64,000 nucleotides of DNA, taken from the sequence record ON529858.1. The stretch is one strand, 5' to 3'. A program made the translations under genes and the position numbers. Position 1 is the stretch's first letter, and every line of letters begins with the position of its first letter. Below are positions 9,936-49,961 of the stretch, one piece after another. The notes below the pieces were generated by a model, which saw only the letters and a program-made list of their open reading frames with translations, was not told the origin of the DNA and ran no database searches.

Positions 9936-12668
9936 ATGAGCGACTTCCACGAAATCCTGTTCCCGCCGACGATCTCCTATGGGTCGTCGGGCGGACCCCG
10001 GTTCAAGACCACGCTGTTCACCACGGACGCGGGCTATGAGCAGCGCAATATCGACTGGACGGAAGTCAGGCACGAATACGACGTGGCCCACGCCATGCGC
10101 GAGTTCGACGGCACGCTGAACGTCGCCGGCATCCACCAGCTTCACGCCTTCTTCATGGCGCGCGCCGGCCGGTCGCACGGCTTCCGCTTCAAGGACTGGA
10201 ACGACCACCGCGTCGACGACGGGCAGGTTCTGGGCTCCGGCGATGGCGGCACGACCTCCTTCCAGATCATCAAGACCTACTACGAGAAGCAGAACGAAAA
10301 CCAGTGGGAGTCGATCTTCGACCGCCGCATCACGAAGGTCGATTGGGACTCCGTGATCACCGTCCGCCTGGACGATGAGATCATCAATCCGATGTATTGG
10401 ACCCTCGACTACAACACCGGCATCCTGACCTTCCTCACGGCCCCGCCGGTCGGCGCTTCCGTCACCATCGACGGCGTCCTGTTCCACGTCCCGGTCCGTT
10501 TCGACACCGACTATTGCGACGTCACGGTCGAGTTCTGGAACGGCGGCTCCTGGCCGTCGATCCCGCTGATTGAACTGCGCCAGCCCAACGACGCCTACAA
10601 GATCAAGAGCCTGACGCTCAACGACACGATCCATGAGGTCCTGTTCCCCGTCGGTGTCTCCTGGGGCGCCTCGGGCGGACCGAAGTTCAAGACCGCGATC
10701 TATACGATCGACTCGGGCTACGAGGCCAACGTCCGCGACTGGACCCGCACGCGGGCGGAATACGAGTGCTCGCACGAGGTCAAGCACCCCGAGCAGATGA
10801 AGACCCTGACCGAGTTCTTCATGAACCGGCGCGGGATGGCCTACGGCTTCCGCTACAAGGACTGGTCCGACTACCGGCTCAAGCAGGAGAAGATCGAAGG
10901 CAAGGGCAACCACGCCCAGAAGATTTTCCAGATCACGAAGACCTACCGCAGCCACCGCGAAGGCGCGGAGCCGACGACCTACGTCCGCCGCATCACGAAG
11001 CTGGCCTGGAACACCATCGCCGGCGTCACCGTCGGCGGCGTCGTCGCCCGCCAGTCCAATGAAGGCGATTGGGGCGACATCACGGACTTCACCAAGCCCT
11101 GGTATCACGTCGACGTCGACAAGGGGAAGATCGAGTTCTACGAGGCCCCGGCCGGCCGCCGCTACGAAGGCGTGACCGACCGCACGCCGCTGACGCTGAT
11201 CACCACCGGCGGACTGTTCACGAACTCGGTTGCGACCAACATTGGCGGCCGGTATGTCTACGCCGATCCCGACGCCGGCTACATCTACATGCTGGGCGGC
11301 GGCGGCGGGCAGAACGGCATTCGGCGCGTCCGGATGTCTGACGGCGTCGAGGACTTCCAGGTGCGGTCCGAGACGATCGGCTTCCCCCTGACCAACGTCT
11401 CCTATGACGACCGCAAGATCAGTTCGTTCGTGGCGGCCGGCAACGGCTTCATCTACGTCATGGTCGGCGGCTTCAACACCCAGGTCCTCTATAAGATCGA
11501 CCTGAGCGACTTCAGCATCGCCGCGTCGCGCGGGACGGCCGCCGGCGGCCTCCCGTCCGGATCGCAGACTTCCGCCGCCCTCGCACCCGGCGCCGTCTCC
11601 AAGGACGGCACGCGGGTCATCCACCTGGGACAACTCGGCGGCGAAGACGCCGTCAACGTCTTCACCACCGAAGACCTGACCCCGGTGCGGACCTGCGACG
11701 TGGGCGGCTTCATCCCGATCGCGAACAACCCCCTGCGCGCCGCCTGCCCGCTCTACGAGGTCAACTTCGGCATCCTCCTGTCCTGGGACGTCAACTCCGA
11801 CAAGGGCGCCCTGGTCGAGCTGTGGGACGACGCCGGGCACAAGCTGCTTCAGTTCGAAGGCGTGGGCGACTGGATCGCTCGCGACGACGGGGCCACGCCC
11901 ACCGACGCCGGCGTCCTGGTCGGCTGGCACGACGCCGACGGCGTCTACATCTCCAAGTATTCCGAGGCCGAGCAGAAGGAAGTCTGGCGCGCCACTGTGC
12001 CCGTCCAGGGCGCGGTGTCCCCGCAGTCGCGCGTCGCCGGGCACATGGCCTATGCGGCGGATGACGTGATCATCCACATCGACACCACCACCGGCGAGGT
12101 GATCACCCGCGCCAGCGAGGTCGACAACTTCTCGTCGGCGCAGTTCTACGACCGCATCACCGACCGCATCTACGGCGTGCCCCAGATCAACGAGGTCGAC
12201 GGCTATCTGGACACCAGCGTCGAGGGGCTTCAGGTCCTGGATGCGGCTGAAATCGTCATCGGCACGGCCGAGTTCCACGTTCCGGTCCGCTTCGACAGCG
12301 ACCAACTGGACGTGACCCAGGACCACTTCAACGTCTCGTCGTGGCCGTCCATCAGCCTCGTCGAAATCCGCGATTGGGTCGAACTCGGGATCAGCGAGCC
12401 GCCGGCGCCGCGCGGCGTCAAGAGCCCCCACACCATCACGCCGGGCAAGCGCTGGCAGACCGTGCTCGCGAGCGGCGGCGTCGGCGCAGTCGCCTATTAT
12501 CCGACGGCCTACGCGGCGTGCCGCCGCCAGTGGGAAGAGTTCGCCAACACCGAGCGCACCGAGTTCATCGGCGCCACCGTGCTCGATAGCGGCAACGCCG
12601 TGTGCATGTGGTCCTACATCCCGGCCGATCCGCTGCCGGCCATCGTTTCTCTAGTTGACGACGTCTGA
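9936..12668 (+). CDS. DUF2460-family tail-tip protein, two DUF2460 units, the second split by a beta-propeller-like insert
   Basis: FHEILFPPTISYGSSGGPRFKT and IHEVLFPVGVSWGASGGPKFKT; two VPVRFD motifs; ATG at 9936 downstream of the promoter motif. Confidence 0.85.
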   Translation: MSDFHEILFPPTISYGSSGGPRFKTTLFTTDAGYEQRNIDWTEVRHEYDVAHAMREFDGTLNVAGIHQLHAFFMARAGRSHGFRFKDWNDHRVDDGQVLGSGDGGTTSFQIIKTYYEKQNENQWESIFDRRITKVDWDSVITVRLDDEIINPMYWTLDYNTGILTFLTAPPVGASVTIDGVLFHVPVRFDTDYCDVTVEFWNGGSWPSIPLIELRQPNDAYKIKSLTLNDTIHEVLFPVGVSWGASGGPKFKTAIYTIDSGYEANVRDWTRTRAEYECSHEVKHPEQMKTLTEFFMNRRGMAYGFRYKDWSDYRLKQEKIEGKGNHAQKIFQITKTYRSHREGAEPTTYVRRITKLAWNTIAGVTVGGVVARQSNEGDWGDITDFTKPWYHVDVDKGKIEFYEAPAGRRYEGVTDRTPLTLITTGGLFTNSVATNIGGRYVYADPDAGYIYMLGGGGGQNGIRRVRMSDGVEDFQVRSETIGFPLTNVSYDDRKISSFVAAGNGFIYVMVGGFNTQVLYKIDLSDFSIAASRGTAAGGLPSGSQTSAALAPGAVSKDGTRVIHLGQLGGEDAVNVFTTEDLTPVRTCDVGGFIPIANNPLRAACPLYEVNFGILLSWDVNSDKGALVELWDDAGHKLLQFEGVGDWIARDDGATPTDAGVLVGWHDADGVYISKYSEAEQKEVWRATVPVQGAVSPQSRVAGHMAYAADDVIIHIDTTTGEVITRASEVDNFSSAQFYDRITDRIYGVPQINEVDGYLDTSVEGLQVLDAAEIVIGTAEFHVPVRFDSDQLDVTQDHFNVSSWPSISLVEIRDWVELGISEPPAPRGVKSPHTITPGKRWQTVLASGGVGAVAYYPTAYAACRRQWEEFANTERTEFIGATVLDSGNAVCMWSYIPADPLPAIVSLVDDV

Positions 12669-47755: not shown

Positions 47756-47760
47756 CATGG

Positions 47761-47798
47761 AAAAGGCCATTTTCACCGCACAGTGAAAATGGCCTTTT
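47761..47798. terminator. Perfect 16-bp inverted repeat between convergent RNA units
   Basis: AAAAGGCCATTTTCAC-CGCACA-GTGAAAATGGCCTTTT. Confidence 0.7.
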
Positions 47799-47807
47799 GA
47801 GTGAAAC

Positions 47808-47894
47808 TGGAGGAATGTGGCGGAATCGAACCGCCGGGTCTCTCGACCATCACAGATTTGCAGTCTGTGGCCTTACCACTCGGTCCAACATCCC
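47808..47894 (-). tRNA. tRNA with GCA (Cys) anticodon and long variable arm
   Basis: GGGAUGU/ACAUUCC acceptor, ACAGA-CUGCAAA-UCUGU, GGCGG-UUCGAUU-CCGCC, U73, encoded CCA. Confidence 0.88.
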
Positions 47895-47897
47895 GAC

Positions 47898-47931
47898 CAA
47901 AAAGCCCGCTCGGCCGAAGCTGAGCGGGCTG
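47898..47931 (-). terminator. Intrinsic terminator closing the large minus-strand RNA
   Basis: AGCCCGCTCAG-CTTCGG-CCGAGCGGGCT-TTTT. Confidence 0.75.
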
Positions 47932-48096: not shown

Positions 48097-48165
48097 CCTC
48101 TCCCGCGCTATCAACCCGGTCGGTTCCCTGGTCAGGCCCTCTCCCGCGCTATGAACCCGGTCGGT
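48097..48165 (-). repeat. Two 28-nt direct repeats (1 mismatch) 13 nt apart inside the large RNA
   Basis: ACCGACCGGGTT(C/G)ATAGCGCGGGAGAGG at 48138-48165 and 48097-48124. Confidence 0.9.
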
Positions 48166-49025
48166 GCCTTCATAAATAGGAAACGCCGCCGAACCCGAGG
48201 GCGCGGCGGCGTGTCTTTCGATGCCCTGAGACGAAGCGGGCTATCCAGAGAGGCTTCCGGGATTATCGTTTCCCCAGGTCGTCCAGAAGGCTTTCACCTC
48301 CCTACCCCTCGAATGACGCTTTGTTTAACCGGGTGTCCCCGGAGGAAGTTGCTGCGCTCCCTGTCGTATTGGACCACTCACCTGCGTCCCCTTCCGAATA
48401 CAGCCGCTAAGCCGCACAAGGAAGTCTGTTCAAGCGGACCGTGCGCCTTGCAGGGCTAACACGGCGACCTTACGTCCGAAGACCAAGGCCAGGAGTCATC
48501 TGTCGTCCAACACCGGCAAGACTTTTGCTTCTTGACAAAAATGCCTGTTTGACACGGGCTACCTACCCGTCGAGGTTTATTCCAAGGACACGCTTACCTG
48601 GAGGTCCATCGGCTTTTGACCGACAAAATGCTCCGCGCCCCAATGTGAACCGAACAGCCCACGGTCTACAGGACGCCGCCGAGTTTGACCCCGACTTAAC
48701 CCTGGAGACTGGACGCCGCACTTAACCCATGTCGTGGGTCTCGCACTAAACGCCCTACGCCTTGGACCTCGATGGTTCTCTCGGAGGATTCCGGCAGCGG
48801 GAGCATCCCTGCTCTCACCTGAACCCATGGTGTTGCCATGAGCCTTGACCGGCCGAGGTAGCCCCTATCCCCCATACGCCTCCATCTCTGGAGCCATCTG
48901 AGGGACACCCTGGTAGGGTGGGTCCCGACGCTTGCTTCGAATGACCGACTTGCGCCGGCGCCGGACTGGAAAGTTCCGACTTCACCACCGGTTGCCCGGC
49001 GGCCTCGCTCCGAAGCGATGAGTGA

Positions 49026-49876: not shown

Positions 49877-49961
49877 CGTGCGATGGCCGAGTGGTCTATG
49901 GCGGCGGGCTCATAACTCGCTGGAGCAATCCGCGTTGGTTCGAATCCAACTCGCACGTCCA
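49877..49961 (+). tRNA. tRNA-CAU with class II long variable arm
   Basis: CGUGCGA/UCGCACG, GCGGG-CUCAUAA-CUCGC, V-arm UGGAGCAAUCCGC, GUUGG-UUCGAAU-CCAAC, U73-CCA. Confidence 0.9.

Follow-up and report, generated by a model that had tools for sequence, protein, structure and literature searches.

In bacteria, a long variable arm is described in reviews as restricted to tRNA-Leu, tRNA-Ser, tRNA-Tyr, and tRNA-Sec, in which it serves as an identity mark (PMC4033280, PMC9976931). Among the closest described systems, one member of the selC* tRNA-Cys group, selC* tRNA-Cys(UCA), is cysteinylated and functions in E. coli opal suppression with engineered cysteinyl-tRNA synthetase (CysRS) variants (PMC5389517), which indicates that a long-armed tRNA-Cys can work in translation. 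The so-called allo-tRNAs are reported to insert either Ala or Ser in E. coli, according to the identity elements they carry (PMC5389517). Here, an 87-nt tRNA-Cys(GCA) gene bearing such an arm is described from positions 47808-47894 (minus strand) of a 64,000-nt stretch of record ON529858.1, referred to below as the window. The source is Brevundimonas phage vB_BgoS-Bajun (Bajun), to whose genome the window is 100% identical; it is a lytic, 207-kb phiCbK-like siphovirus of the Dolichocephalovirinae. Its identity elements and its relatives suggest that the molecule is probably a functional elongator tRNA-Cys charged by the CysRS of the host, the arm being a lineage-specific addition that would leave the identity unchanged.

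The gene was called as tRNA-Cys(GCA) by ARAGORN, matched the Rfam family RF00005 with 42.1 bits (cut-off 29), encodes its own 3′ CCA, and already carries the annotation tRNA-Cys in the record (BAJUN_03110). It is the sole Bajun tRNA for Cys. No published description of a long-armed phage tRNA-Cys was found in literature searches for such a molecule; the phiCbK genome paper lists and counts its tRNAs with no comment on their structure.

Read on the minus strand, the acceptor stem comprises 7 bp between 47888-47894 (positions 1-7, with G3 at 47892) and 47812-47818 (positions 66-72, with U70 at 47814), beginning with G1-C72, G2-C71, and G3.U70; six of the seven pairs covary among orthologues. The discriminator U73 at 47811 is invariant in 12 long-armed and five short-armed relatives. 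The D arm (47870-47885) has a normal 7-nt loop (A14 G15 ... G18 G19) on a stem of G10-C25, C11-G24, C12-G23, and G13.A22, in which an extra A at 47884 is bulged after G10, appearing as one inserted base in the Rfam alignment. The anticodon arm (47852-47868) presents GCA at 47859-47861 within the loop CUGCAAA, where GCA, A37, and A38 are invariant. The variable region (47836-47851) consists of an unpaired GAU, a GGUC-GAGA-GACC hairpin (47837-47848; 4-bp stem, GAGA loop), and one unpaired C; with more than 10 nt and a stem-loop, it is of the class II type. The T arm (47819-47835; GGCGG / UUCGAUU / CCGCC) has a 5-bp stem, three pairs of which show compensatory changes. The 7-bp acceptor stem, 5-bp T stem, UUCRANY T loop, G18 G19, and 7-nt anticodon loop are all those of an elongator-type cloverleaf, and the minimum-free-energy fold regains the acceptor, anticodon, variable, and T helices, with a single-sequence z-score of only -1.48. 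The first-pass annotation, made from the letters of the window alone, had listed the GCA anticodon, U73, the 16-nt variable region with its GGUC-GAGA-GACC stem, an irregular D stem, and G3-U70, all of which are borne out by ARAGORN, Rfam, and sequence reading; its remark that the long arm is abnormal for a bacterial-type tRNA-Cys also holds. It named no strand.

Every sampled member of the Dolichocephalovirinae has a syntenic tRNA-Cys gene of 85-89 nt, and such genes also occur on contigs from lake and viral metagenomes. Carriers include phiCbK, Magneto, Karma, Swift, Rogue, BL10, RBC63, Colossus, and CcrPW, the 350-kb Brevundimonas phages Kabachok and Marchewka, three lake-metagenome contigs, and one IMG/VR contig. 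Each of the 12 distinct long-armed sequences keeps GCA, U73, G1-C72, and the D-stem bulge; their variable regions measure 14-18 nt, and the variable arms form 3-4 bp stems under a GNRA loop (GAAA, GAGA, GCGA, GCAA, or GGAA). In the covariation alignment of 11 sequences, 98.3% of cells are paired and compensatory changes occur at 14 of 23 pairs, values reached by none of 500 shuffles, while structures slid by 1-3 columns score far lower. The loop-closing pair of the variable arm itself covaries (C-G in seven orthologues, G-C in four). Taken together, these results indicate that the variable arm is a maintained structure and not an artefact of alignment. The D-stem bulge is A in seven and U in four of the 11 orthologues, with no compensating change. 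A further stretch, at L026:7985-8085, resembles the 5′ two-thirds of a tRNA-Cys with the same bulged D arm and GCA loop, carries an insert of about 30 nt at the T-loop site, and received no ARAGORN call.

All statements on charging made here are drawn from identity rules set up mainly in E. coli. The sequences show the gene with its fold, conservation, and covariation, its kinship with short-armed tRNA-Cys genes, the lack of a phage CysRS, and a normal use of Cys codons; charging with Cys, acceptance of the arm by CysRS, and an advantage of the arm to the phage are inferred. CysRS recognizes chiefly U73 and the GCA anticodon, and in minihelices U73 is sufficient by itself (PMC9976931). No CysRS gene was found in the five phage genomes, so that the enzyme acting on this tRNA must be that of the host. 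When class I synthetases, CysRS among them, dock onto a tRNA, its variable region points to the solvent, and an added arm would therefore plausibly be tolerated. In the proposed sequence of events, read-through of the upstream hairpin would give transcripts of the tRNA as part of an RNA-gene island, the 5′ end of the tRNA would probably be matured by host RNase P while its 3′ CCA is encoded, and host CysRS would recognize U73 and GCA. The charged molecule would then read UGC, the Cys codon preferred by the phage (115 UGC versus 9 UGU in the 15,162 codons of the window), supplying Cys-tRNA for UGC-rich phage messages. The arm would have been added, in this phage lineage, to an older phage-type tRNA-Cys body that already had the D-stem bulge; candidate gains are fold stability, discrimination from the host tRNA by some factor, or contact with the GOLLD RNA encoded nearby.

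Several features of the Bajun molecule weigh against cysteine charging. Its Levitt pair is G15:C48 and not the G15:G48 needed by E. coli CysRS; the latter requirement is species-specific, being known for the E. coli and H. influenzae enzymes only (PMC9976931), and relatives of the Bajun tRNA have C48 or U48. The 16-nt variable region with a single unpaired 3′ base is as in Bajun's own tRNA-Ser. The discriminator U73 is common to tRNA-Cys and phage tRNA-Ser(CGA), so that the earlier argument that U73 fits Cys provides weaker evidence than had been assumed, and U73 does not speak against Ser. Finally, G1-C72, G2-C71, and G3.U70 together form the core of alanine identity.

The serine-like features would be explained if the long arm made the tRNA a substrate of seryl-tRNA synthetase (SerRS), with Ser inserted at Cys codons; such a tRNA could descend from tRNA-Ser(GCU) by a single anticodon change. 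Ser identity rests mainly on the variable arm, SerRS relying on this arm together with G1-C72 and G2-C71 and ignoring the anticodon (PMC9976931), and Bajun presents both pairs beside its Ser-like variable region and U73. Measured over the whole molecule, the nearest paralogues are also long, namely tRNA-Ser (68-71% identity), long tRNA-Lys, and long tRNA(CAU), with a maximum of 76%, and a SerRS is encoded by Kabachok-type relatives. Bajun itself lacks one, however, and the likeness weakens in the family, where G2-C71 is replaced by C2-G71 or A2-U71 in eight of the 12 orthologues and the arm has 3-4 bp with 1-4 unpaired 3′ bases, in contrast to 5 bp and one unpaired base in most phage tRNA-Ser, the sole exception being the tRNA-Ser(GCU) of Kabachok (4 bp, three unpaired 3′ bases). 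The D and anticodon arms are, moreover, nearer to short-armed tRNA-Cys than to any tRNA-Ser, and the proteome comparison described below yields no Ser-to-Cys singletons and catalytic Cys positions written as UGC. Acceptance of Ser is accordingly considered very unlikely. The Kabachok SerRS (L027:1094-2401, minus strand; record ~114.4-115.7 kb) is a 435-aa protein combining an arm-binding Seryl_tRNA_N domain with a class II core; no SerRS was found in Bajun, Magneto, Colossus, or CcrPW.

A second alternative is a dual identity, in which host alanyl-tRNA synthetase (AlaRS), by virtue of G3.U70, would aminoacylate a considerable part of this tRNA both in Bajun and in the environmental GAGCC lineage, some UGC and UGU codons then being read as Ala beside Cys. 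G3.U70 is the major AlaRS determinant, and tRNAs into which it is transplanted accept Ala, a dual Tyr/Ala identity being among the outcomes (PMC9976931). Some natural allo-tRNAs that combine a long arm with G3:U70 are efficient amber suppressors in E. coli, and insertion of Ala is reported for them (PMC5389517). Bajun joins the wobble pair with G1-C72 and G2-C71, and across the 127 tRNAs of five phages G3.U70 is confined to four tRNA-Ala, this tRNA-Cys, and one tRNA-Arg. The pair is also kept in two environmental sequences, mgL022 and vrL031, that are only 80% identical to each other, which implies that it has lasted through much divergence. Its rarity and its persistence together mark it as both unusual and tolerated.

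G3.U70 is, on the other hand, not a family trait. It occurs in three of the 12 long-armed orthologues (Bajun, mgL022/L023, and vrL031) and is missing from the other nine, with G3-C70 in Kabachok, Marchewka, and mgL025 and U3-A70 in all Caulobacter phages. Its absence from Kabachok, the nearest relative of Bajun, suggests a separate origin in Bajun. The molecule further has U73 instead of the A73 seen in phage tRNA-Ala genes, and strong CysRS determinants would compete with the wobble pair. To our knowledge, A73 is present in all known tRNA-Ala. In view of these points and of the codon evidence given next, dual identity is regarded as unlikely, and some charging with Ala through G3:U70 is possible in Bajun.

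A changed meaning of Cys codons was looked for in the proteome. UGC encodes two essential Cys positions of Bajun, the catalytic one in the FPCQ motif of the C5-methyltransferase and the metal ligand in the EGCLS motif of the peptide deformylase. Across 53 four-way orthologue sets from the Bajun, Magneto, Kabachok, and Colossus genomes (16,549 well-aligned columns), Cys counts are nearly the same (149, 148, 150, and 152, respectively), and 66 columns are Cys in all four phages. Among columns with Ala in three phages and a different residue in the fourth, that residue is Cys in 9/149 for Bajun, 6/119 for Magneto, 1/102 for Kabachok, and 3/99 for Colossus. The comparison of Bajun with its three relatives (9/149 against 10/320; odds ratio 2.0, p = 0.14) is a weak test that is blind to low-level mischarging, and Magneto reaches its value with U3-A70. 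Frequent Ala of the relatives at Bajun Cys sites had been hinted at by a nine-gene sample; the genome-wide four-phage test revealed no Bajun-specific excess. Ser-to-Cys singletons were absent from each of the four phages in these sets. There is thus no trace of a changed Cys-codon meaning in Bajun, in a test that low-level mistranslation would escape.

The proposal of the first-pass annotation that the tRNA is mischarged, with Ser or Ala placed at Cys codons, is therefore not favoured: G3.U70 is mostly absent and G2-C71 mostly replaced, the arm is unlike that of tRNA-Ser, the core is nearest to short-armed tRNA-Cys, and the Cys codons appear normal. As read from the sequence, the tRNA would keep its Cys identity, and partial mischarging with Ala or Ser may also take place in Bajun. 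Other identities were considered and rejected. Leu requires A73, where the molecule has U73; Tyr requires A73 and U35; and Gly requires C36. A tRNA-Sec-like or 8/4 fold was also ruled out, since an eighth acceptor pair would put U8 opposite C65, and ARAGORN, Rfam, and covariation all give a 7/5 arrangement.

With regard to ancestry, a D-arm plus anticodon-loop pattern of the molecule had no match in 185,579 prokaryote species (one genome each), and a looser tRNA-Cys pattern none in 401 Pseudomonadota genomes, which suggests that hosts do not carry this type of tRNA. The pattern is present in low-GC phage tRNA arrays (L024, L028, and L032), where 76-nt tRNA-Cys genes have the same D-stem bulge and a 5-nt variable loop, and in Erwinia jumbo phages, where the bulge is absent. 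Positions 8-43, which cover the D and anticodon arms, show 75-86% identity between the long-armed genes and the short-armed tRNA-Cys of Erwinia phages and low-GC arrays; the best match among other phage tRNAs is 76%, and the best tRNA-Ser 72% (four fully sampled phages and the Rogue main cluster). The simplest history would be the insertion of a hairpin into the variable loop of a phage-type tRNA-Cys, and descent from a class II ancestor is also possible.

The acquisition of an arm is not peculiar to tRNA-Cys in these phages. In the syntenic tRNA-Trp(CCA), first gene of the main tRNA cluster, the variable region measures 5 nt (Magneto, Rogue), 8 nt (Kabachok), 14 nt (Colossus), or 16 nt (Bajun), and all phages compared keep the anticodon CCA and G73. 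Arm size can therefore change in these phages while the identity marks stay the same. The Bajun copy (record 133321-133408; L003:522-609) is 88 nt long with a GAAA-capped arm and G73, compared with 76 nt in Magneto and Rogue. Long-armed tRNAs of phiCbK-like phages comprise, besides Trp(CCA) with G73, Asn(GUU) with G73, Lys(CUU, UUU) with U73, and a CAU tRNA with U73; for Trp, Asn, and Cys, the discriminator fits the amino acid of the anticodon. The Bajun tRNA-Asn(GUU) (record 137885-137970; L003:5086-5171) is an 86-nt molecule with a GAAA-capped arm and G73, and its D arm and variable-arm flanks resemble the phage tRNA-Leu(CAA). Outside this group, the low-GC phage array L028 holds a 94-nt tRNA-Asn(GUU) (11402-11495) beside a 76-nt one and an 86-nt tRNA-Arg(UCG) (12517-12602), so that long arms on short-arm families are not confined to phiCbK-like phages. 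Gain of an arm seems to have recurred among phage tRNAs and to be tolerated by them; alone it is no sign of Ser or Leu identity.

Further unusual tRNAs were observed in the same genomes. The long tRNA(CAU) of Bajun (window 49877-49961, plus strand; 85 nt, U73, variable hairpin GGA-GCAA-UCC) has orthologues with U73 in Magneto, Kabachok, and Colossus, and that of Colossus is 76% identical to the long tRNA-Cys, so that the two may be paralogues. The amino acid accepted by this tRNA(CAU) may be Met or, if its anticodon is modified with lysidine, Ile. Long-armed tRNAs with Lys anticodons (CUU and UUU; 87-90 nt) carry U73 where A73 is usual and were seen in Magneto (L017:1951-2132), Rogue (L019:2066-2247), and Colossus (L020:2920-3009), with none in Bajun. 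The tRNA-Ser(CGA) has U73 and not the usual bacterial G73 (L003:2766-2951, L017:2576-2663, and L018:6012-6099), as does the Bajun tRNA-Ser(GGA). For the Bajun tRNA-Tyr(GUA) (L003:4468-4550), ARAGORN draws an 8-bp acceptor and a 4-bp T stem, an 8/4 arrangement known from allo-tRNAs and from certain tRNA-Ser and tRNA-His of phages. The Bajun main cluster (record 132800-138800) lacks a tRNA-Ala(UGC), which Magneto, Rogue, Kabachok, and Colossus have among their Leu, His, and Ser genes. Bajun is also the sequenced phage that has the G3.U70 tRNA-Cys, with no functional link evident between the two. In total, Bajun has 21 Rfam tRNA matches, and ARAGORN reports 24 tRNAs for the main cluster and three more for the RNA island that holds the tRNA-Cys; one of the 24 lies within the gene annotated as peptide deformylase and is probably spurious.

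On the minus strand, this island comprises first the conserved core of a GOLLD RNA (48223-48641), which matches Rfam RF02032 with 104 bits and E = 9.5e-28, short of the gathering score of 150. Next come a short stretch without coding sequence, a hairpin and its U run, the tRNA-Cys about 330 nt downstream of the GOLLD core, and a second hairpin with a U run; the opposite strand carries a two-piece tmRNA and two CAU tRNAs (ARAGORN, Rfam). The first hairpin, read from the sequence as GC-rich and followed by its U run (47897-47930, minus strand), ends 2-4 nt before the tRNA 5′ end, has a similar counterpart at the same place in Magneto, and looks like the terminator of an upstream small RNA, in which case the tRNA would come from read-through transcripts. 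The second, a long hairpin and U run just downstream of the tRNA (47758-47800, minus strand), is a likely terminator by the same reading. Neither was listed by a consensus terminator scan. A Cys-rich leader peptide was sought upstream of the tRNA and none was seen, the frames there being a 13-residue peptide without Cys and a frame that enters the tRNA. Between the GOLLD terminator and the pre-tRNA hairpin (window 48100-48175, minus strand), a motif of about 30 nt (ACCGACCGGGUU.AUAGCGCGGGAGAGG) occurs twice in direct orientation.

GOLLD genes are often found next to phage tRNA islands, and phage tRNAs have been proposed as cargo of the GOLLD cage (bioRxiv 10.1101/2024.12.08.627333). A further alternative is that the molecule is a tRNA-shaped RNA with a main role other than decoding, acting either as a decoy or spare against a tRNA-cleaving defence or as a partner or cargo docked in the GOLLD cage via its GNRA loop, a loop with which the added arms of several tRNAs in phiCbK-like phages end. 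The ordinary Leu and Ser tRNA arms of these phages are GNRA-capped as well, however, so the loop is not special. All features needed for translation, including the 7/5 stems, T loop, G18 G19, A36 A37 A38, U73, and CCA, are intact and conserved, and the phage would have no other tRNA for Cys. This reading is hence considered highly improbable. Another proposal regards the GNRA arm as a tag on a set of the phages' own tRNAs (Cys, CAU, Trp, Asn, and Lys), by which a phage or host factor such as the GOLLD cage, a tRNA nuclease, or a repair enzyme would distinguish them from those of the host, with the tRNA(GCA) of the G3.U70 lineages, including Bajun, acting also as a dual Cys/Ala acceptor; it is considered unlikely.

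If Cys is still carried, as is most likely, the long-arm shape that textbooks confine to Leu, Ser, and Tyr is open to a tRNA-Cys. Such a tRNA-Cys is maintained across an entire phage subfamily, frequently together with Trp, Asn, Lys, and CAU tRNAs that also have long arms, and the determinants proper to each amino acid are kept. Charging with Cys would mean that synthetases for short-armed tRNAs tolerate the arm in nature and would make these molecules natural scaffolds for orthogonal-tRNA engineering, and it raises the question of what use the arm is to the phage. The G3.U70 copy of Bajun also provides a ready-made case of U73 and GCA competing with the alanine determinant.

Compared with known molecules, the phage tRNA shares with canonical class I bacterial and phage tRNA-Cys the GCA anticodon, U73, G1-C72, the anticodon loop YUGCAAA, and a D arm of the form GG(N)CYGAR.GGUWAGGC, and differs in the 14-18-nt hairpin of the long-armed family where the canonical variable region has 4-5 nt. 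Bacterial tRNA-Ser and tRNA-Tyr resemble it in having G15:C48, a long variable arm, and a D stem of 3 bp with G13.A22; neither has a GCA anticodon, tRNA-Tyr needs A73 and U35, and tRNA-Ser of these phages always begins with G1 G2 and in most cases has an arm of 5 bp and a single unpaired 3′ base, in contrast to the 3-4 bp and 1-4 unpaired bases of their long-armed tRNA-Cys.

Nematode nev-tRNAs (PMC3333845, PMC4300185) are likewise class II bodies with anticodons of short-armed families. They keep leucine determinants and are leucylated, whereas the phage tRNA has U73 and not A73, and its determinants match its own anticodon. The allo-tRNAs (PMC5389517) have in common with it a long arm, anticodons outside Leu, Ser, and Tyr, in some cases G3:U70, and in some cases occurrence in phages, yet are Ser-like with 8/4 or 9/3 arrangements, unlike the 7/5 molecule with a tRNA-Cys core found here. 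The selC* tRNA-Cys (Mukai et al., PMC5389517) also unite U73, GCA (UCA in some), and a long variable arm in a tRNA-Cys. They are, however, tRNA-Sec mimics with an 8/4 fold and long D and anticodon stems from anaerobes with Sec machinery; no selB or cysS partner was found for the phage tRNA-Cys in the five phage genomes, and this tRNA combines a 7/5 fold with an ordinary D loop.

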